Sequence record: NC_041884.1
DNA length: 64,000 nucleotides
Reading direction: 5' to 3' (one strand)
Shown here: positions 22,223 through 45,167 of the stretch, piece after piece
How positions within the stretch are numbered: position 1 is the stretch's first letter
Layout: the number at the start of each line of letters is the position of its first letter
Notes under the pieces: model-generated
What the model was told of the DNA's origin: nothing
What the model saw: the letters and a program-made list of their open reading frames with translations, nothing else
Databases searched by the model: none
Position numbers and translations under genes: made by a program

Positions 22223-22238
22223 GAAATTCTCAAATATA

Positions 22239-22360
22239 AATAATTAAGAAGATATATGTAGTCCCTAAGGCACGACATCCACTTGTTTAAATTAGAGAGA
22301 TCGTCACCTCTCCCAAGCCGCTCTACTACATTGGCGTATACATATATCTTATTAATTATT
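22239..22360 (-). repeat. 22-bp inverted repeat (1 mismatch) enclosing a 78-nt structured loop
   Basis: arms 22239-22260 and 22339-22360. Confidence 0.8.
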
Positions 22361-22362
22361 CA

Positions 22363-31886: not shown

Positions 31887-31986
31887 TAAATTATTTAAGA
31901 TTGTAATCATACAATATTCTAATACAGATATTTTCAAGGCTAAGAGTTTTTTAAAACAGAATATGATTACAATCTTAAATAATTTA
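31887..31986 (-). repeat. perfect 25-bp inverted repeat with a 50-nt loop
   Basis: TAAATTATTTAAGATTGTAATCATA at 31887-31911 and its complement at 31962-31986. Confidence 0.9.
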
Positions 31987-35200: not shown

Positions 35201-36808
35201 TTAGTTTTTCCATTCAGCATAAATAATAGGTATCTTCTTAATTGAATACTCAGGATACACTTTTTCTTGAAACCTTCTAGCAAGTTCTTTATTACTATTA
35301 CATTGCCAAGTTCGATCTAAATATTTCAATACATTATTTTCATTATCAACAACCCAATAATGATCAATATATATTTGGAACAATCCATTCTTAGGTTTAA
35401 CTAAATCATCAATTTTATATCTAGTAACCTGGTCTGCTCGAAAAGACATAACTATTCCTTATTATGTTTAAATGGTACTAAAGTAACAGGAACGAGTCTT
35501 TCTACATATTTACCTAATGGTTCTTTATTAGCCTTGATGATTTTACTTGCAAATTGGCCAGCAAGAGTATTTAAACCATAAACTTCAATAACTCTTTCAG
35601 CTTCTTCAATTAATTTACTATTGACAACCATATTCTTAAACCTTGGAGAAAGGGTCTCCATAACGTGTATCAATCCATTTGATATGATTACAAGTAGAGC
35701 ATTGATACTTACGTTTACTATACATTAAATTTCTATGTTCATCATAACATGCTCTATAATCACGATAGATCATTACATGCTGGCAAGATTTTACTTTTAA
35801 TAAAATAATAAAGAGTATAATAAAAGCAAATATTGCCATTACCACCACCAATGTATCATTACACGCTCACCTTCTTTAACACCTTTGTGTTCTAACCAAA
35901 GATAAATACGAGGGTAGCGTTCATACAACTCGGAATTAAGAGTAGACTTATAGAAGTAGTTATCATTTCCTAACTCATAATCAGCCCACAATTGTCTAAC
36001 TTCATCTTCAATAAAGGTAGGACAATCAGACCACTGAGCATCGAAAAACCAAACCTTTTCTACAGATTCTTGTTCAGTAACATTACAGCTACTACCAGTT
36101 GTAGAAGTGGAGTCATTAAGGCATTTATAGAATGTATCCTTCCCTTCTTCAATTGTTGTATATTTATCTTCAATTGGAGGAGCATCTCGAAGCTCTTCTA
36201 ATAAGTGAATATTATCTTTCCAAGATTTAATGTTTTCAATTTCATCTGAAGTAATAAGAATACAATCTATTAAATATTGAACTGCTTCTTTAAATCCTTT
36301 ATTAACACATCCTGCTAGTGTCATATGAGCATTAATATGATTAACAGGATAAATCCAAACTAAAGGTTCTACATTTTCAGGTATAATAAATTCAGCATCT
36401 TTATACCCTTCGATATAACCTTTAAGATTTAAATGAATGCCATTACCTAGAGTACAAAATAAATAACTAAGAAAAGCTTTCTTTGTTTTAAAAGAAGAAC
36501 TAAACATCAGTTTATAATCTAAATAGTCCATCATGAATACCTTAAGGGTTATAGTAAGGACTCGTAATAATATGTGCTAAGACTCTATTATGTTGGTCTA
36601 CATCTAAGAAAGTATTAAATTTTTGATAATCACTATTACAACGAATTTTAAAATGTTCAAATAATTTTGAACCAAATTCAGTTCCAAAGATTTCATCAAA
36701 AATCATAGGAGTTGCTTTATTTTGAAATTGAATAACACGTTTTTGAACTCTTGACCATATTTGAAGATCAAGCACTTCACTGTTTGTTAAACCATAATTA
36801 TTTGACAT
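32269..36808 (-). other. cluster of about 11 hypothetical genes
   Basis: coupled ORFs; 33512-33736 is a paralogue of 42979-43197 (MSKVL..I..QIK.DG.LPEH.EVLKLY). Confidence 0.6.
34057..34833 (-). CDS. protein with a C-terminal PTH2-like (peptidyl-tRNA hydrolase) domain
   Basis: LKMYIAVLDDVP...LVAHSVLGAH...W...FRKCVIRV. Confidence 0.6.
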   Translation of the reverse strand: MLKRTIPSAKAALEQIAQLREAEKEIDSIFGHSRTAIHFKHNPSDKPIFICKNGWVLRYFHTRPSDTSDYILYKQSDLDAAQDYDRIPVIEFNCDNHTLKFNKYGGATIHKNIPQEVIDIVREFVEDPQYKTTPIETKPTSYLKMYIAVLDDVPDFIVPTLVAHSVLGAHLKFEELGVGNFKSKVTYNEWLEHSFRKCVIRVNRREFDKIIKLPMQVYLGHENKTLNGEKSCAVVHPVSSDNVPNVLKFAKLWSPVCP

Positions 36809-36914
36809 CTGGAATTTCCTTTATATTCAATTTCAAAATAAAACTGAATAACTAACTAAGAGCCACGCTTAAATACAGAGTTAAAGATAACTCAAAAACG
36901 GACTACGTGGATTT

Positions 36915-36994: not shown

Positions 36995-37066
36995 TTGAGA
37001 AAATCAGATTCGAACTGATCACGGCCAGAAATTATTCTAGTGCTCTACCAACTGAGCTATTTCACA
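36995..37066 (-). tRNA. pseudo-tRNA with a collapsed anticodon loop
   Basis: TAGCTCAGTTGGTAGAGC D-arm, ATCAG-TTCGAAT-CTGAT T-arm, anticodon arm CTAGA-ATAATT-TCTGG, no CCA. Confidence 0.7.
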
Positions 37067-37191
37067 TGTGCAATGTTTTATCTATTTAGATACCAATATT
37101 CATTCATCATTTTTAAATACGTTGATGGTCGTATATCTTTATTAAGTATTTGCCTTAGTTAATTATTCAATCATAATGACTACCTAAGTAA

Positions 37192-37797
37192 TCAGTATTC
37201 GATCATTGTACTTAAATTGATTTCACTTAATGTAATATCAATTTCATTTTCTAAAAAGTCGATACGCTCTTGTAAGTTTTTAACAGTTTCTGTGATAGTC
37301 TTGGAGCTACCTGTTACAATACTTACGCCTAAAGTGTCTTGAAGTTGCTTATATACTTCTTCTTTTTGAGTAGCTTCAACATTAGATAGCTGACCTACAA
37401 TTGCTTGTTCTTGACGTTCTACTTCATTTTGAGCAGTAGATTGTTGACTTTTTAGAACACGCACATATTTCTTTTGAAGACTTAATGTTGATTTAATAGC
37501 TAGTAATTCAGTAATACTTACTTTACTTCCATTGAAATCAACTAAAGTTTCTAAATTCTTTTGAGCAATCTTAGTTTTAAGAGTACTAATTAATTTTAAG
37601 TTGCTTTCAACTGTATCAGTATCTGACTGGATATTAGTTAAAAGTTCTTGTTCGGTTTTGAAAGAACGATCTAAAGGACGTTTAGTTAAACCTTGAATAG
37701 TACTAACAAATTTACCATTAGAAAGTTTTTCATTAATAACGTTCTCAGCTTTTTTAATTAAAGTAAGAGCACGATGAATTGAAATTGTTTGAGTCAT
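37192..37797 (-). CDS. long coiled-coil protein (ISIHRAL...K N-terminus)
   Basis: heptad-rich sequence ending ID..LSE.N, strong codon bias. Confidence 0.7.
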   Translation of the reverse strand: MTQTISIHRALTLIKKAENVINEKLSNGKFVSTIQGLTKRPLDRSFKTEQELLTNIQSDTDTVESNLKLISTLKTKIAQKNLETLVDFNGSKVSITELLAIKSTLSLQKKYVRVLKSQQSTAQNEVERQEQAIVGQLSNVEATQKEEVYKQLQDTLGVSIVTGSSKTITETVKNLQERIDFLENEIDITLSEINLSTMIEY

Positions 37798-37830
37798 TTT
37801 AATATCTCATTAAAGTGTAATAATTAAAAA

Positions 37831-37949
37831 TAAATCACATAAGGATGCTAATAGAAATCAGGAACGGTACAATCTAAGAACAACATTACATATAAGGACA
37901 AAATAATGAATTTTTTTTTGAAATTCTATTAGCATCCTTATGTGATTTA
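37831..37949 (-). repeat. perfect 26-bp inverted repeat with a 67-nt loop
   Basis: TAAATCACATAAGGATGCTAATAGAA at 37831-37856 and its complement at 37924-37949. Confidence 0.9.
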
Positions 37950-37963
37950 AAAAGGTTAAAAAT

Positions 37964-38310
37964 ATATGGAAGACAGATAGTGTGTTGTTACACCAAATGC
38001 TCTAAGGGTCTGTATATGCGTCTCTAGATACTTTATTTCCACGTTGTTTCTCTAGATTAAGTGTAAGGCTTCGCCCATCATACACGTTGCTCCAGCATAA
38101 CTTCTAGAGGTGTCGGGAGCGCAATCTAACATTCATGCCTTTACCTAACCGCCCATATTACTTTCTGCATTACATATACAACTGTACTGGTCCTTCCCCT
38201 GAGTTTCTACGTTTAGACATCTTTTGGAATTAGATACTTATTACGGATCACTCTTGCAACTCTTTAAAAGATGGCTACCTTCAGGCCAACTTCCTAACTG
38301 CCTTTCATAT
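37964..38310 (-). ncRNA. about 350-nt ncRNA whose 5' part resembles 23S rRNA helices 42-44 (uL11-binding site)
   Basis: GTTAGGAAGTTGGCCTGAAGGTAGCCATCTTTTAAAGAG...CGTAATA...CTAAT...AAGATGT-CTAAAC; closed by ATATGAAAGGCAG/CTGTCTTCCATAT. Confidence 0.75.
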
Positions 38311-38326
38311 ATTTTCAATCACACTG

Positions 38327-39201
38327 TTATTGAGTTTGTTGCCAAGAAACTACTTTAGGGTAAGTTTTTAAATCATCAAGAGCTTCATCGATAGTATTAA
38401 ATCTACATGGACATATATGACCTTTAGTAAGATTTATATACGAGTAAGTATTATCATTTTTATTTCGTAATATCATTACTTCAACAATACCATCTGTTCG
38501 TGTAATTTCTAATTTCAAAAGAATCCACCTTGATGTAATGTAACTAAGAAACAAACTATTGCAACAACAATAAGTATTATGAAGATAACTCCTAATACCA
38601 TTAAAATAGTTGAAATCATATTAAACTATTTCCTTAAAACGGATCCCAATTTCATTGTAGGCTTCTATATACGTTACAGCACCATCAATTTCAAAACCAA
38701 CTGGTTTTTCTACAATTTCAGTAATGAATCGAAGAAGCGTTCTAACATCAGTAATAGTAGTTAAATAAAAACCTTTTAATGGTAAACGAACTATCCATGT
38801 ATCAATAGAAGGGCATTTTTTGATACCTTGAATTAAGGTAACATTAATATCTTCTTCAATCATATTTTTTAAATTTACTAAACTAGCATTCATAGTAAAA
38901 GGTCTAGAAACTAATTGTTCTCTACATTCTTTTAAAACTTCTAAAGCTGTTTTCATAGTTACTCTTCAATATCTTGATATGGATGTAATACGTAATCTTC
39001 TAAAAAAGAATCTATTGAGTCCCATTCAAAGAAACAACATTGGTCACCTTCAGGACAAGTTGCAAAGATTTGATTTTTATACATACGAGCAATTAAAGAT
39101 GCATTAGCTACATCAAAATCCTCATCAGGGTATTTTAAAATAATCTCTTTACATTTAGATTTAATTATTTCTTTAGAATCAGATTCTTCATATATTTTCA
39201 T
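38327..39201 (-). CDS. three small hypothetical proteins
   Basis: ORFs 38327-38554 (start probably internal), 38621-38956 and 38959-39201. Confidence 0.55.
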
Positions 39202-39220
39202 AATTAAATCTCAATTAATT

Positions 39221-40880
39221 TATAAAATTACATTTACTGTTGGTTCTTTCGACAACACTTTTCGGATTTTATATGAAGATCGTATCAAAGGTTCTAGCTT
39301 CGATCCTCTGTTGTCATGCACCTCTAAACATTTGTGTGGTAACCCACTCACTGAACCTTATCAGCTTGAACTCAATGTGCCACCCAGAGATTACTCTGAC
39401 CTCATTTATGTTGTAAATGTAATTTTATATTTAAATAATAAGAGCCAAGTCTTCACAAGAGGATGGATTCGAACCACCGACAACAGTAGGGATTTTACTG
39501 CCTACAATACTCTACCGACTGAGCTACTCTGCAATTTCCACTCTCTTATTATTTAGATGGTAAGAATATAAGTTAGTGTTAAGACGTTGATACATTAGGT
39601 ATTACCCTAACGCCAAGAGTTGAACTTGTTAAAAACCTTCTGTAACCCAACAACTATCTTTATTACTGGACAGTAATCATCTGAGATTATTAACCTATAC
39701 CGTATTCTTACCTCTAAATAATAATTAAAAGACATCTAATAACCTAACTTCAGATAAGGGTACTTACTCGATTATCATGAGACTCTACTAAATGTCTTTT
39801 AATTATTATTTAAAAGGTGTGAGGTACAACTCTCACAATGAACCATGTAGCCATTTTGGTTAGCGTCAAGCTGTATACAGCTTAGTTTCTCTAGTCAGCC
39901 CGCTTTAGGTTGTCCCTAATTGTGTGATATCAACACTACCATTTTTCTATCTTACGATAACACCAATGATCAAGTGCTTGTGGTACTAGAAGTCATTAAG
40001 GTGAATATGCCTTTATAGATCATACCAAATCTACAGGCCCATCACTCCCTTCAAATTTTATTACGCCACATCCTGTTTGGACTTACACCGTGTTGGATGT
40101 TATTTATCGGTAGAATTTGAGCCATTAACCAGAGCGCATTTATTAACTTATACTTTCATATAAGATTAGACCTTTTAGAGTGTCCTGATTTCTCAAGCTG
40201 AACTCTATTACCATCTCATATAAGTTGTCAGACTTATACTAACTACTTTTAGAATTACTCCTAATTTCGAGTGTCTCTACTATACAAAGGATAAATCCTT
40301 CTTAGCTATTATAACCATATGAAATAGAACCTCACTTAGAATTATAATATTTAGGTAATTGAGGAAAAACATGAGAATATAAAAGCATACTGCCATAATA
40401 TACGAGCCGTTAAGCCATCAGAATCGAACTGAGTCCTCTTTTATACCTCGATGCCCTTCATTATCGAAAAAGGGCTTTGGCACAATTGTGTTGTGCATCT
40501 CGTATCACTTGAGGTAATAACTCTTGGAATCTAGCAGAGGAGCGACCTCTCTTATTTTATATACCGATTGGATTCTTGTCTCGGTTTGTGGGTCTATTAC
40601 ATGTCATCGTTTCTCAGTTGACAGTGAGGGATCTACAAAAATTGGAATAGACTGACAATGGAGGTAATCATTAATCCCCTATTACAGAGATTAATCCTAT
40701 AGAATGCCTAAGAATTTCAGTTGCAATCTTACATTCAAAAGGACTTATATCAATTAGTATATTGGACAATATGTTCTGGAGACGGATTAGGCGTCTCACT
40801 CTTTTACTAAAAATTAGTAAACGCTTTTAGCCTCGGATTAAGAGACATTCCACTACATTTTAAGCTACAGACCTCAATAC
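39221..40880 (-). ncRNA. 1.7-kb non-coding cluster of stem-closed structured RNAs
   Basis: no credible ORF; abutting inverted repeats 39221/39429, 39432/39555, 39552/39718, 39715/39812; several T-loop-like hairpins. Confidence 0.7.
39454..39533 (-). tRNA. pseudo-tRNA with an expanded or alternative anticodon arm
   Basis: TAGCTCAGTCGGTAGAGT D-arm, GGTGG-TTCGAAT-CCATC T-arm, GTAGG-CAGTAAAATC-CCTAC (10-nt loop), bulged acceptor, no CCA. Confidence 0.65.
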
Positions 40881-40905
40881 TTCCAATCATACTAAATTCT
40901 ATACA

Positions 40906-41346
40906 TTATATAGAAACTGTTTTACAAACTTTTGATAAAATAACATCATCAAAAGAATTCTTTGTTATTTGTTGCCACTTAATAGAAGAGGAATTTGCAT
41001 CTCTTACATATTTAGCATCTTTTGTAAATTGTACATACCTGACTATAGCAGATTTTCTTAAAACACAACTATAAATATTATAGATCAGTAATACATCACC
41101 ATCACTAGCAAAGTCATTAGTTGATGATTGTATATGCACAATAGCAGGAACTGAGTAAACTAAAGGACGAATTTCAACAATAGCTTTAGGATTTACATAG
41201 TACTTATCTGTACTTGTTTCTCCAACTTTATACCATGACTTTTCAGCTGTCATTAATTCGATATCACTTTGTACTAATTCTGCATTAGCTTGGATTGTTG
41301 TAAATAAGGAACAAGCCATTAAAGCTAAAATATAAAAATATTTCAT
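40906..41346 (-). CDS. secreted protein (surface-adhesin-E-like pattern)
   Basis: signal peptide; WYKVG...YYVN...YSC...W..I...S.D...L..VC. Confidence 0.5.
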   Translation of the reverse strand: MKYFYILALMACSLFTTIQANAELVQSDIELMTAEKSWYKVGETSTDKYYVNPKAIVEIRPLVYSVPAIVHIQSSTNDFASDGDVLLIYNIYSCVLRKSAIVRYVQFTKDAKYVRDANSSSIKWQQITKNSFDDVILSKVCKTVSI

Positions 41347-41843
41347 TATTTTAAATCCTTCTCTTCTATTAAGGTTATTCGTCTACATAATCCTTGAGAT
41401 TTATCTTTAGCATAAGTTTTAACTAATTTAAAATAAGATTTATTAGGAATCTTTGTAACTATAAATTCAAAGATTTTATTAAACCATATAGCTAAATATG
41501 CACATAAGATAAATATAAATATAATAGCTGAAAGAGTACCTACTACAAATTTAAATAAAAAACCCATTAATAAAAATGGATTAAAACTAGTTAATTCTCT
41601 TGTATCAAAGATTGTTATTGTTTTAACAGCATAAACTAAGATTACACTACATAAGAATAAATAAAGAATAGCTTTCAGTAGTGTAGAAAATAATGTACAA
41701 ACTGATCTTAAGCAACAAAGAGGAGACTTTGGGTTTTCTGGATCAAAACGAGTAACAATCCAACTTGTTAAGAAAAAGTTAGAACAAAAACAAAGAAATT
41801 TGTATGTCTTGCTATTAGCACTTAATTCAAAATTATCATTCAT
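41346..41843 (-). CDS. membrane protein
   Basis: hydrophobic segments; start probably MNDNF. Confidence 0.55.
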   Translation of the reverse strand: MNDNFELSANSKTYKFLCFCSNFFLTSWIVTRFDPENPKSPLCCLRSVCTLFSTLLKAILYLFLCSVILVYAVKTITIFDTRELTSFNPFLLMGFLFKFVVGTLSAIIFIFILCAYLAIWFNKIFEFIVTKIPNKSYFKLVKTYAKDKSQGLCRRITLIEEKDLK

Positions 41844-41988
41844 TATGGATGACCTCTTCCTACGATAGTTAAGAGAATCCATGCAAAGAAGCCTAAAGCA
41901 CCACTTAGTACAAAACTTGCTATAATGATAAATTTGATAACACCTAACACATCTGATTTTGTCATGGAGTTTATCCTTAAAGGGAATA

Positions 41989-42046
41989 TATGTTTAAAGG
42001 ATAGAAAGGAAACTGGAGCGAGAATCCTTTCTATCCTTTAAACATA
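41989..42046 (-). repeat. perfect 22-bp inverted repeat with a 14-nt loop
   Basis: TATGTTTAAAGGATAGAAAGGA and its complement. Confidence 0.85.
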
Positions 42047-42049
42047 CAC

Positions 42050-42613
42050 TTAAAAATATTTAATAAATTTACTTAAGTGTTTCTTTTTTATTTTAAAAGA
42101 AGTACTTTCAATTCCACCAAACATTTGACAATTAGCTAGTATCTCTGCCCAAGCAGTTAAATACAAACTAAATCCTATCTCTGATTGAATTAGTTCTTGT
42201 GCTTTTTCATCACTTGCTTTTAATATATGGAAATCCATATCATGTTTAACAAGATCATGACCTATTAAGAGATGAGGAAAGAGTTGTTTATATATCTCAT
42301 ATGACACTTGTGCATGATTGGGAAACTGTTGTTTACCTTCTTCATTTACAATTCTACAATAAGGCTTTCCTAAATCATGATAGATTTGATAATGCTTCAT
42401 TGTTTCATAATCTAAGAGAGTAATCCAATTCTTTTTATATACTTCTATAAGGGATTCAGGAACACCTTCAGGTACTACTCCTTTTTCTAAAGAAAGTAAT
42501 AGCTTTAAATATTCATTATTAACCATTAAACCATGTTGATACATATTGACATTTTCAAACTGATAACAGTTCTTCATATCTTTAAGTACCTTATCAAAAG
42601 TTAAGATCTCCAT
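42050..42613 (-). CDS. HD-domain phosphohydrolase
   Basis: QHG...YHDLGKP...FPNHA...HDMDFH...D-type motifs. Confidence 0.75.
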   Translation of the reverse strand: MEILTFDKVLKDMKNCYQFENVNMYQHGLMVNNEYLKLLLSLEKGVVPEGVPESLIEVYKKNWITLLDYETMKHYQIYHDLGKPYCRIVNEEGKQQFPNHAQVSYEIYKQLFPHLLIGHDLVKHDMDFHILKASDEKAQELIQSEIGFSLYLTAWAEILANCQMFGGIESTSFKIKKKHLSKFIKYF

Positions 42614-43426: not shown

Positions 43427-45167
43427 TTACTTCTCAGATGCAGCTAATATACCACAACAAAGAATTAAAGCTACAAACAAACTACCACCAAATTGGTAGA
43501 ATGGTGTAGCATAAGAAGGAGTAAAATAGTTCGTAAAAGCAATAGCAACAATAGCACTAATAACTACTAGTAAAACCATAGCTATGATTATGCCTACACC
43601 TATTAACATACCTTTAAGAAATTTCAATATGATTTTCATTTTGTTTTATCTGATCTAAAGTATCTTCTTCAGCTTGCATGTTTACAAATAATTTAATCTG
43701 TTTTTGAAATATATCTTTCATATCATTTGAAACATTTTTAAAGTTAGGAATTGCTACAGGTTCATCATTCCAAATAGAATTTTTATTTGACATAAGCTAA
43801 AGCCTTAGTGATTGTAGATAAATGCATCTCTTCTACTTTTAATTTTAATTGTTTAATATCTTTTATTTCGTTAAAGAATTTAGAACGAATACCAGTAAAA
43901 CTAAAAAGAGTTGTATCTTTAGTTGTTTTATCAATATGTACAAATCCAAAAGATGTTTGAGCTGTAAAACTTAAAGGAGATTCAATCCACTTTATTTTAA
44001 TAACTTGAGCCATATAACACCTAATTAACGATAGCTTATCATACCTAAAGATTTTAATTTTGAAATAATTGCACCTGAAGATCTTTTATGTAATCGAGCA
44101 ATTTCTTCGATACTAAGTTTTTTATTAACCCATTCATCTCTTAAGGCTTTAACTTCTATAGTAGTCCATTCTGAGTATCCTCTATAATCAAAGTAATGAT
44201 TATATTGAGTAACTTCTCTATCTCTTTTTCGAGTTTGCTCTGGACTAGAATACATAGTTGGATAGTAATGTATTTCAGTTTTAATTGGATCAGGTAATCT
44301 ATTTACTTTTCTATCTAATTCTTTTTTCAGCTCTTCTTTAAGTCTTTCTTCTGTTTCTAATAAGAGTTTTTTAAAGTTACATATAGTAATACTGAGGACT
44401 AGGAGGAAAATAGCTGTCATACCTACAACAGTAGCTATTAAATCATTCATACTTGATTCCAAAACAATAAGAAAGAAATATTAAAAAGACAAGGTAAAAA
44501 CCTATATTACATATAATTAATTGAATTATTAATGAGAAGTTAATCTTAGGAGCAGAATTAATCATACCTAGTGTACAAACACAACAACCTAGTAATGATA
44601 GATAATGAATTACTTCATACATATAAATTCTCTTTAAAGATGGATAGGACAGAAGGAAAGGTAAAACACGAAAAACAACAACACAGGAGATATGTAATCC
44701 TATCCATCTTTAAAGAGAACGTAAAGGAGTTTTAATGAGACTATTAATATTCTTCACCATCATCATTACTCTCCTTTAAATTTTCTTCTAATTCTTGAAT
44801 ACCTTCATTGATATGCTCTTCATCATCTAATTCATAATCTTTCTTAGAATTAGAATGAATCGAAGATTTATTAAAGGTATTCATATGCTTTGCTATAAAG
44901 TTATTTTTCATAAGGAATAAATTTCCAACGATCTAACTTTCCATAATATTGCAACTGATGATTCTCTAGAATATAGACAAAGCCAGAATCTTCTTTTTCA
45001 CATTTATTTAAAAAAGATTGAATAGTTTTTGAACTTATAACTTTAGAAGGAATCTTACAATAATGAGCATTGTCATAATAACGATAGAAATGTAATTGTG
45101 GTTTTGAATAAATAACTTCATCATAAACACAATCTAACATTTCACTAAATAAGACAAATTTAAACAT
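43427..45167 (-). other. cluster of small hypothetical and membrane genes
   Basis: ORFs 43427-43639, 43783-44013, 44025-44462 (C-terminal WT..E...L...H.RS.GAI..KL HTH-like), 44901-45167 and several peptides under 60 aa. Confidence 0.55.
44628..44719 (-). repeat. perfect 22-bp inverted repeat with a 48-nt loop
   Basis: TTCTCTTTAAAGATGGATAGGA at 44628-44649 and its complement at 44698-44719. Confidence 0.9.

Follow-up and report, generated by a model that had tools for sequence, protein, structure and literature searches.

We analyzed a 64-kb stretch of DNA (the window) from the Acinetobacter jumbo phage vB_AbaM_ME3 (ME3), a giant Acinetobacter virus. All genes in the window lie on the minus strand, and positions 39202-40905, flanked by ME3_190 and ME3_191, are free of ORFs. 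The only GenBank annotation within this 1.7-kb gap is a tRNA-Tyr (GTA, 39454-39532), and an RNA of about 1 kb described below is unannotated there. A preliminary description of this DNA had interpreted 39221-40180 as an array of five noncoding RNA cassettes. Our analysis agrees that the region is noncoding RNA territory and places it on a single strand, the minus strand; the kilobase RNA lies mostly outside that interval. The features are collected in Table 1.

Table 1. Features in and next to the ORF-free stretch of ME3 (positions in the window)
Feature	Position	Strand	Basis
Kilobase RNA: structured, stable ncRNA, ~1,058 nt	39815-40872	-	Metatranscriptome contigs, fold, variant covariation
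Variable 5′ domain of the kilobase RNA	40288-40872	-	X10 variant contigs
Conserved 3′ domain of the kilobase RNA	39815-40287	-	X10, X3 and X6 contigs, ≤1-2 differences
Internal module: 7-bp closing stem, two hairpins, T-arm-like hairpin (loop UUCGAUU)	40397-40503	-	Fold, X10 changes
tRNA-sized element inside the kilobase RNA	40063-40139	-	83-87% identity to phage tRNA-array DNA
Terminator-like hairpin (39818-39837) and U-tract at the 3′ end of the kilobase RNA	39811-39837	-	Terminator scan
Module D: hairpin, 27-31-bp AU-rich stem, 44-nt top	39711-39816	-	Inverted repeat, fold
Module C: 155-nt insert with T-loop-like hairpin, closed by 39559-39568/39703-39712	39546-39724	-	Inverted repeat, fold
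Module B: tRNA-like gene 39454-39532 atop a 16-bp closing stem	39429-39558	-	Inverted repeat, Rfam
Module A: 175-nt insert, 20-24-bp closing stem	39214-39436	-	Inverted repeat, fold
16-bp hairpin masking the ribosome-binding site and start codon of ME3_190	39153-39215	-	Inverted repeat I4, 94% complementary; pair probability 0.83

The surroundings offered little guidance. Searches for relatives of the two flanking proteins returned none, and examination of the neighboring proteins as pointers to RNA partners gave no informative clue. Comparison of the region with the 16S, 23S, and 5S rRNA operon of Escherichia coli (blastn-short, nhmmer) revealed no similarity and hence no sign of an rRNA mimic, and a replication origin was dropped as a reading because a skew switch is absent from the window. 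In environmental strains, the divergence of 38968-40664 was about 10 times below that of the flanks (0.18% versus 2.05% in X1, P=6e-9; 0.15% versus 0.86% in X3, P=0.008). A recent recombination sweep, instead of selection, could be the source of this low divergence.

Extent and strand of the kilobase RNA

Nine RNA-labelled sequencing runs from eight study codes contain 25-43% of the sampled words of 39150-40950, compared with up to 84% in DNA-type holders. These RNA runs come from surveys of lakes and other waters. We examined contigs from two metatranscriptome (RNA) runs, X6 and X10, which have different study codes and differently built libraries, and from two DNA runs, X1 and X3. In X10, contigs cover 39815-40259 and 40230-40870, and in X6 four pieces cover 39858-40872; the 5′ limits at 40870 and 40872 agree to within 2 nt. 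While the DNA runs cover the whole examined stretch including the flanks, depth in X6 and X10 is zero at 37500-39800 and 40880-42500, and the flanking genes have no contigs. Positions 39815-40872 are the only part of the examined 5-kb stretch found in the RNA runs. The data are assembled contigs of low depth (2.6-16.5), with approximate ends, from which strand, true ends, and level cannot be read.

The 3′ border coincides with a terminator-like hairpin (39837-39818, −7.1 kcal/mol) that has three G-C pairs and is followed by CCUUUU. Consistent with an intrinsic terminator, the X10 RNA contig stops at 39815, inside the U-tract. At the 5′ border, a perfect TATAAT lies 33-38 nt upstream of the RNA end, without a good −35 element. 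We found no sigma-70 promoter at a fitting position, and the sole promoter-like site of the scan, which would start transcription inside the RNA, was rejected. A 13-nt complementarity between 40837-40849 and 39791-39803 was likewise rejected as a closing stem of the RNA, as it is not contained within the mature ends and many chance pairs match it in quality.

It is highly improbable that the signal in the RNA runs is an artefact of carry-over DNA, bleed between samples or a shared foreign element, with no abundant kilobase RNA behind it. The contigs are shallow, a single sequencing programme could lie behind the many lake samples among the RNA runs, and RNA libraries may also contain DNA. However, carry-over DNA would also cover the flanks, which are empty over 3.9 kb; in X6 the contigs break off at these same borders and do not continue into unlike sequence; a terminator sits at the 3′ border; two differently built libraries with different study codes agree; and sequence variants are present within a single run.

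These variants allowed us to compare the fold with natural changes. The minimum free energy of the kilobase RNA is −266.2 kcal/mol, against −244.3 ± 9.0 in shuffled sequences (z only −2.4) and −241.5 for the plus strand of the same stretch. Contig 10 of X10 (40230-40870) is 96% identical to ME3, with 23 substituted positions and three one-base indels. A second X10 contig agrees with it over 40230-40287 and is divergent beyond, the X10 variants merging at 40230-40259. Thirteen of the substitutions fall in base pairs of a fold computed from ME3 only, and the pair is kept in 11 of them, including two double compensatory changes (40290/40297 and 40457/40471). In a permutation test, the probability of two or more doubles was 0.0014 and that of two or fewer broken pairs was 0.03; this covariation comes from one 96%-identical variant. 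When the same variant was placed on the plus-strand fold, pairs were kept in only 4 of 15 cases. Since pairs are retained on the minus strand only, we assign the RNA to that strand. The internal module folds at −28.0 kcal/mol (z −2.15); its second hairpin holds the compensatory pair 40457/40471 as well as a wobble change at 40472, and the X10 changes at 40486 and 40490 occupy loop positions. Within the kilobase RNA there are no minus-strand ORFs longer than 42 aa, and the one-base indels of the variant disrupt its small ORFs.

Taken together, the RNA-only coverage, the 3′ end within the terminator U-tract, and the covariation of the variant indicate a discrete, stable, structured RNA of ∼1,058 nt. 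Searches of phage, plasmid, IMG/VR, metagenome, and GTDB sequences found no distant homologues of it, and exact 20-mers of its 3′ domain had no matches in IMG/VR.

A tRNA-sized element within the kilobase RNA

The conserved 3′ domain contains a 77-nt element made of a 4-bp and a 6-bp helix on one continuous 3′ strand, an invariant side hairpin, and a T-loop-like heptaloop. Copies with the identity given in Table 1 occur in unannotated DNA within tRNA arrays, both those of the Klebsiella phages FKP3, KP13-26, and KP2025 and those of contigs L003-L009 and L011. Besides ME3, we count seven distinct sequences with the element inside phage tRNA arrays, and our model R1 of the element scores all copies at 93-118 bits. 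Helix 3 covaries fully: both sides have changed in five of its six pairs, and 100% of cells are paired. Neither Rfam at E≤10, tRNA model included (ME3 and FKP3 copies), nor ARAGORN (every copy) reported a match or a tRNA. A degenerate two-anchor pattern recovered only two contigs already known, and at four loci related to the neighboring hydrolase gene the element was absent, with no match to any part of the ORF-free stretch. The preliminary description had proposed that the cassettes are mobile modules. This holds for one piece, the 77-nt element, which recurs in tRNA arrays of unrelated phages.

In those arrays the element is a free-standing, tRNA-sized gene with tRNA-like spacing, while in ME3 it is embedded in the kilobase RNA. 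This difference bears on the suggestion, made earlier for 39221-40180, of a polycistronic precursor. Applied to 39815-40872, it would mean that several small stable RNAs, among them the 77-nt element and the T-loop module, are cut from this span and that the kilobase form is a transient intermediate. The free-standing copies elsewhere and the internal module, with its own closing stem and T-arm-like hairpin, fit such a precursor, and standard RNA-seq would lose tRNA-sized products and leave the precursor alone visible. Nevertheless, contigs span both borders of the element (40035-40185 in X6, 39815-40259 in X10). Depth in X10 is also even along the RNA (16.5 for the 3′ contig versus 9.35 and 5.31 for the two 5′ variants), which is unexpected of a short-lived precursor that would be the only phage RNA detected. 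We therefore consider a transient precursor unlikely; the kilobase RNA reads as a stable end product.

The chain of stem-closed modules

Beyond the 3′ end of the kilobase RNA, four modules follow one another up to ME3_190. Their stems pair 39214-39237 with 39413-39436 (A; 24 nt, 88% complementary), 39429-39444 with 39543-39558 (B; 16 nt, 94%), 39546-39568 with 39703-39724 (C; a perfect 12-mer and 10 more pairs with one bulge), and 39711-39741 with 39786-39816 (D; 31 nt). Ungapped inverted repeats with arms of at least 16 nt number four in 39150-39850, against a mean of 0.05 in 300 dinucleotide shuffles; none of the shuffles reached four, which excludes chance. A single thermodynamic fold of 39140-39845 on the minus strand keeps all helices, with 0-5 nt between neighbors and mean pair probabilities of 0.99 (D), 0.89 (C, inner part), 0.84 (A), and 0.79 (B). 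The outer 12-mer pairing of stem C has a probability of only 0.02 in this fold owing to competition by modules B and D.

Four of the five stems proposed earlier are thus real, arranged head to tail, and far beyond chance, and the T-loop hairpin noted in the third module is present. The fifth, 39811-39818/40170-40177, is a perfect 8-mer of no special standing and does not mark a unit boundary, because the RNA contigs place 39815-40180 in a 1,058-nt unit reaching 40872. Moreover, the RNA, whose mature 3′ end is at 39815, excludes half of the 8-mer. What had been taken for a last cassette of ∼350 nt is the 3′ third of the kilobase RNA, which has its own terminator.

Module B carries the gene that GenBank labels a tRNA. 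Against the Rfam tRNA model (RF00005) it scores 30.0 bits with a cut-off of 29 (E 0.0011-0.032), which is above threshold and marginal, and in the alignment the acceptor stem is broken by a gap or bulge and 20 nt are inserted at the anticodon arm. Both the D-arm and the T-arm have canonical form. Folding yields an anticodon loop of 10 nt or, alternatively, one of 7 nt that lacks U33; the gene does not combine an unbroken 7-bp acceptor stem with a 7-nt, U33-containing anticodon loop. ARAGORN calls no tRNA here. The gene is best called tRNA-like, and its earlier designation as a pseudo-tRNA stands, if narrowly.

The arms of the stems share a 12-mer, TYTAAATAATAA, with four exact copies in alternating orientation at 39430, 39546, 39713, and 39803 and just one further exact copy in the rest of the 64 kb. 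We dropped the idea that it is a phage promoter, as its shorter forms are not enriched genome-wide in ORF-free DNA. This 12-mer raises the question of whether the inverted repeats are features of the DNA, such as MITE-like terminal repeats or recombination cores, with incidental RNA pairing. The alternating copies flanking neighboring modules would suit that explanation, as would the 5′ flank motif that module B shares with a pseudo-tRNA at 36995-37066, which is expected if a tRNA and its flanks were duplicated together, and the clear movement of the 77-nt element between unrelated phages. On the other hand, the stems continue well past the 12-mer in sequence peculiar to each module (C has 10 additional pairs, and the arms measure 24 nt in A and 31 nt in D), and two environmental strains show neither substitutions nor presence/absence polymorphism across 39202-39816. 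In addition, paralogous modules are absent elsewhere in the ME3 genome, and no transposase or endonuclease gene adjoins the array. A DNA-level origin of the repeats is thus rather improbable.

Modules A-D (39214-39816) had no RNA coverage in runs X6 and X10. The chain leads straight into the 16-bp hairpin in which the ME3_190 ribosome-binding site and AUG are buried. The modules might be a long structured leader for ME3_190 and later genes, acting by attenuation, termination or start-codon masking, rather than separate RNAs. Long hairpins between other minus-strand genes (e.g., 41985-42050 and 44622-44725) are comparable. A leader, however, has no need of a T-loop hairpin or a tRNA-like fold, the G+C-rich stem and U-run that mark intrinsic terminators are missing from these stems, and riboswitch and T-box families gave no match. 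We regard this explanation as quite improbable.

Our preferred reading is that the ORF-free stretch is a minus-strand RNA island in which the kilobase RNA (40872 to 39815) is followed by the module chain (39816 to 39214), whose modules are probably cut by host RNase III; we give it a probability of roughly 0.55. The kilobase RNA would be transcribed from 40872 to 39815, end at its own intrinsic-type terminator, and act as a scaffold or decoy on host translation or the tRNA machinery. Past this point, the ∼600 nt up to the next gene would fold as abutting modules D, C, B, and A, each closed by a 16-31-bp AU-rich helix, and the hairpin masking the ME3_190 start would come after module A. Read-through transcripts would be cut in the module stems. 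We invoke the host enzyme because a search for a phage-encoded RNase III in ME3 found none. Such cutting would free the modules, each capped by its stem and resistant to exonucleases, and separate them from the mRNA downstream. The long AU-rich helices proposed earlier as processing stems do have the length of RNase III targets (about two helical turns, ∼20 bp or more) in A (20-24 bp), C (up to 23 bp with one bulge), and D (27-31 bp); stem B, at 16 bp, is short.

Long stems that are formed by flanking sequences, join the ends of an RNA, and are cut by RNase III to leave stable, stem-capped ends are familiar from the rRNA operons (16S, 23S) and from phages T7 and lambda. As in those systems, stems A (24 bp), C (up to 23 bp), and D (31 bp) of ME3 are of the right length. 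Unlike them, the four ME3 units abut (0-5 nt), have arms with a common 12-mer, and enclose tRNA-like and other folds, and their cleavage is a prediction.

Relation to other phage RNAs

The preliminary description had raised the possibility of ROOL- or GOLLD-type RNAs. Both are large phage RNAs that lie beside tRNA genes, are very abundant, and have a two-domain layout (bioRxiv 10.1101/2024.12.08.627333). GOLLD (RF02032) is a large ncRNA of phages and prophages that is often found beside tRNA islands. The ME3 RNA is similar in that it is ∼1.06 kb long, lies in an island of tRNA and tRNA-like genes, combines a conserved 3′ with a variable 5′ domain, and embeds a tRNA-shaped element; judging from the contig data, it is also abundant in lake metatranscriptomes. 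ROOL (RF03087) is likewise a large ornate phage and prophage RNA near tRNA islands. The sequence models tell a different story. The GOLLD model (416 positions of the conserved 3′ region, cut-off 150 bits) had 25 candidates scored across the entire ME3 genome, none of which matched at E≤10. The ROOL model (574 positions, cut-off 99.1 bits), which is little more than half the length of the ME3 RNA, also gave none at E≤10, as was the case for control genomes. A search with RF01998 (group II intron domain) produced no match. When 38900-41100 was scanned with all of Rfam at E≤10, neither GOLLD nor ROOL appeared, only the marginal tRNA match and chance matches that we discarded: miRNA-type hairpins on stem D, icd-II (22.9 bits, cut-off 99), and AdoCbl (17.8 bits). 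Module A matched no family. The features shared with GOLLD (phage-borne, near tRNA genes, two halves) are a matter of lifestyle and not of homology; the kilobase RNA resembles GOLLD and ROOL in lifestyle and belongs to neither family.

We tentatively propose that 39815-40872 may found a new class of kilobase phage RNA, unrelated in sequence to GOLLD and ROOL, abundant, and in the same niche. It would be built on the 77-nt module, which is horizontally mobile, resembles a tRNA elbow, and has 29 invariant bases that might contact a universally conserved partner in translation or tRNA processing, and its stem-closed neighbors would belong to the same RNA toolkit. GOLLD and ROOL, which form cages, are among the least understood RNAs known. 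As a lytic phage in culture, with a host that is kept in the laboratory, ME3 offers a tractable system for the function of large phage RNAs.

The RNA of the 77-nt element, compact and under strong constraint, moves between tRNA arrays of unrelated phages and is overlooked by tRNA finders and Rfam, and it could explain part of the purpose of tRNA islands in phages. Phage T4 has small stable non-tRNA RNAs, species 1 and 2, among its tRNA genes, and the enzymes that mature the tRNAs presumably mature these RNAs as well. By its place in the tRNA arrays of other phages, the 77-nt element is like them, whereas its ME3 copy lies inside a kilobase RNA and not in an array.

Lastly, the head-to-tail chain suggests a general packaging rule for phage ncRNAs, with long AU-rich closing stems for processing and protection, and such a rule could guide the search for others. 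The preliminary description had seen the same design around the tRNAs of an intron, but this link is weak, as the 24-nt repeat there is 71% complementary and largely the acceptor stem itself. Elsewhere in ME3, the pseudo-tRNA at 36995-37066 has a weaker version of the closing-stem design, and a 357-nt RNA at 37956-38318 has the same one.

A kilobase RNA in public sequencing runs

The window corresponds to nucleotides 124001-188000 of the genome of the Acinetobacter jumbo phage vB_AbaM_ME3 (KU935715, 234.9 kb) at 100% identity. Since the minus strand carries every gene surrounding the RNA island, the island is read 5′ to 3′ on that strand. No ORF of at least 50 aa was found on the minus strand of 39202-40905, where the sole GenBank annotation is a "tRNA-Ser/Tyr-type" entry, tRNA-Tyr at 39454-39532. 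When we queried public runs with sampled words of 39150-40950, 20 runs contained part of it. Nine of these, under eight study codes, are labeled RNA and are mostly lake-water metatranscriptomes; each contains just 25-43% of the sampled words, compared with up to 84% in DNA-type runs.

Contigs of four runs were mapped over 37500-42500. Those of the DNA-type runs X1 (wastewater) and X3 ("money") covered the whole interval, and those of the metatranscriptomes X6 (four pieces, 39858 to 40872) and X10 (39815-40259 and 40230-40870) were confined to 39815-40872, with zero depth over the 2.3 kb left and the 1.6 kb right of this span. Between studies, the 5′ limits differ by at most 2 nt, and the 3′ limit, a contig end at 39815, lies inside a CCUUUU tract after a terminator-like hairpin (39837-39818). 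Depth in X10 is even, at 16.5 for the 3′ piece versus 9.35 + 5.31 for two 5′ variants. The simplest reading is that 39815-40872 is a discrete, stable RNA of ∼1,058 nt, its ends being approximate as contigs reveal neither exact ends nor strand, and that it far outlasts the phage mRNAs. It would likewise outlast the 357-nt RNA at 37956-38318, which X6 and X10 contigs do not cover; in the X1 strain, the latter RNA carries an ∼20-nt insertion and a 3-nt deletion (38268-38322). The preliminary description had proposed a head-to-tail array of RNA cassettes, the last closed by 39811-39818/40170-40177. According to the RNA-run contigs, that cassette belongs to the much larger RNA, and because the latter spans the interval, the pair, a perfect 8-mer, marks no unit.

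The minimum free energy of the minus strand was −266.2 kcal/mol (shuffles, −244.3 ± 9.0; z −2.4), and that of the plus strand was −241.5. Natural variation is provided by the X10 contig spanning 40230-40870, which differs from ME3 by 23 substitutions and three one-base indels. When the 21 listed substitutions were located in the fold predicted from the ME3 sequence alone, 13 struck base pairs and 11 of the 13 kept pairing, including double-sided changes at 40290/40297 (C-G to U-A) and 40457/40471 (A-U to G-C). By permutation, at least two double changes have P = 0.0014 and so few broken pairs P = 0.03. The one-sided changes are of the G-U type and thus compatible with the minus strand only; the plus-strand fold keeps pairing in 4/15. 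Frameshifts from the indels disrupt the two longest small ORFs containing them, from which we conclude that the RNA is non-coding. Over 40230-40287, a second X10 contig is the same, and it is divergent beyond, and the 3′ part is near-invariant in all runs, so that the 3′ domain is conserved and the 5′ domain variable. Within the 3′ domain, a perfect 16-nt palindrome (39868-39883) could fold into a hairpin or pair in an intermolecular duplex. Divergence across 38968-40664 is ∼10-fold below that of the flanks in both environmental strains (X1, 0.18% versus 2.05%, P = 6e-9; X3, 0.15% versus 0.86%, P = 0.008).

Relationship to known RNAs and the 77-nt element

GOLLD and ROOL are RNAs of phages and prophages, frequently close to tRNA islands (bioRxiv 10.1101/2024.12.08.627333). 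The kilobase RNA fits this description, and the preliminary description had suggested an Rfam search for large RNAs of this type; however, neither covariance model (GOLLD, RF02032; ROOL, RF03087) matched ME3 at E ≤ 10. It is therefore a large phage RNA beside tRNA genes, previously unnoticed, that is neither GOLLD nor ROOL. We found no rRNA similarity, no paralogues in the ME3 genome, and no relatives via flanking proteins, the neighboring hydrolase gene, exact words, or plasmids.

Relatives were found for one part alone of the ORF-free stretch, a 77-nt element that matches unannotated DNA at 83-87% identity; the matches lie in three Klebsiella phages, five metagenome contigs, one MAG contig, and two IMG/VR contigs, one of them 381 kb long. 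Six of these contexts place the element within a tRNA array, on the tRNA strand and with tRNA-gene-like spacing; the others are tRNA-bearing contigs with the element between ORFs or tRNA genes and no dense run. Extreme tRNA arrays occur on metagenome contigs (L006, 1312-2253 and 3417-4189; L011, 958-1545 and 4516-5796), with eight consecutive tRNA-Glu, six consecutive tRNA-Lys, and repeated Asp/Ile/Met units.

In a 6-bp helix compared across eight distinct sequences, five pairs show both-sided changes and every cell is paired; no shuffled or slid control comes close. The 29 consecutive bases 40102-40130 are invariant. This helix and a 4-bp terminal helix use one continuous 3′ strand, resembling the acceptor/T-arm stack of tRNA, and its 21-nt loop contains a G-C-closed heptaloop, UGNAAGN, suggestive of a T-loop pattern. 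Neither Rfam nor ARAGORN called the element a tRNA, and no Rfam family matched at E ≤ 10. Only the ME3 copy is embedded in a longer RNA, and RNA contigs span both of its borders. The element represents an unclassified RNA family among tRNA genes of unrelated phages, overlooked by tRNA finders and Rfam. As for the suggestion that the cassettes are mobile modules, this one module is truly mobile.

The kilobase RNA also contains a T-arm-like module, and its neighbors include a suppressor tRNA, a tRNA-end hydrolase, and a CCA-adding enzyme. Based on these neighbors, the T-arm-like module, and the embedded tRNA-array element, we infer a role aimed at translation or tRNA. A 21-nt inverted repeat (43159-43179/43461-43481, 81% complementary), its right arm inside ORF ME3_197, encloses the suppressor tRNA jointly with a tRNA-Arg-like neighbor. 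Directly upstream of the kilobase RNA, ME3_191 (40906-41346, minus strand) matches Pfam Adhesin_E (surface-adhesin protein E; 24.9 bits, cut-off 23.7).

Stem-closed modules and their possible processing

Four of the five proposed closing stems, A-D, were confirmed by inverted repeats, shuffles, and a joint fold. Four ungapped inverted repeats with arms of at least 16 nt occur in 39150-39850 versus a shuffle mean of 0.05, and 0/300 dinucleotide shuffles reach four. All four stems coexist in a single predicted fold of 39140-39845, with 0-5 nt between adjacent stems and mean pair probabilities of 0.79-0.99. The 12-mer TYTAAATAATAA has four exact copies at the modules, in alternating orientation, and one other in the 64 kb. 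Because it repeats in their arms, adjacent stems compete for 8-14 common bases, a competition settled for B and D in the predicted fold. The modules show zero changes in the two environmental strains.

Coordinates of closing stems, hairpins, and copies of the 77-nt element
Feature	Position	Strand	Description
Stem A	39214-39237/39413-39436	−	24 nt, 88% complementary
Stem B	39429-39444/39543-39558	−	16 nt, 94% complementary
Stem C	39546-39568/39703-39724	−	perfect 12-mer plus ten further pairs, one bulge
Stem D	39711-39741/39786-39816	−	31 nt
Hairpin over ME3_190 start	39153-39215	−	16 bp, 94% complementary, directly after module A; also in global fold
Long AU-rich hairpins	22237-22362, 31887-31986, 36714-36844, 37831-37949, 41985-42050, 44622-44725		26-30-bp stems, tRNA/ncRNA island
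77-nt element	40063-40139	−	ME3 copy
77-nt element	L002 3001-3077; L004 7841-7917; L006 4221-4297; L007 1738-1813; L008 3416-3492; L011 4838-4937		copies in comparison DNA records

The pseudo-tRNA that had been noticed inside stem B is present, if marginal: the gene (39454-39532) has canonical D- and T-arms, a bulged acceptor stem, and an abnormal anticodon loop, scoring 30.0 bits against the Rfam tRNA cut-off of 29 with no ARAGORN call. A second pseudo-tRNA (36995-37066, minus strand) has the 5′ flank motif AUCUAAAUA in common with module B and a weaker closing stem. The two share 76% identity over 50 nt (36995-37091, minus strand, compared with module B). It looks as if the tRNA-like gene had been duplicated together with its flanks.

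Long AU-rich helices with 24-31-nt arms are a habit of this genome region, as 8/13 such repeats in the genome fall in window 22-45 kb. These eight, with arms of at least 24 nt, comprise the six tabulated hairpins and two at the modules and the neighboring RNA; one closes the 357-nt RNA. Several of the hairpins start with UAAAU.

In this arrangement, a kilobase RNA ending at a terminator precedes a stem-closed module chain, which runs directly into the masked ME3_190 start codon. RNase III processes the flanking stems of 16S and 23S rRNA as well as T7 and lambda transcripts; ME3 has no RNase III gene of its own. From this established action, we infer that read-through transcripts would be cut by RNase III in stems A, C, and D and, with less certainty, in B, yielding stem-capped modules and freeing the downstream mRNA from the chain. 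The preliminary description of a polycistronic non-coding RNA with processing stems was partly right, holding for the modular RNA and its processing-type stems and failing for the last cassette. In the predicted fold, the ME3_190 ribosome-binding site and AUG are hidden in the hairpin after module A, an arrangement that could tie translational control to processing of the module chain.
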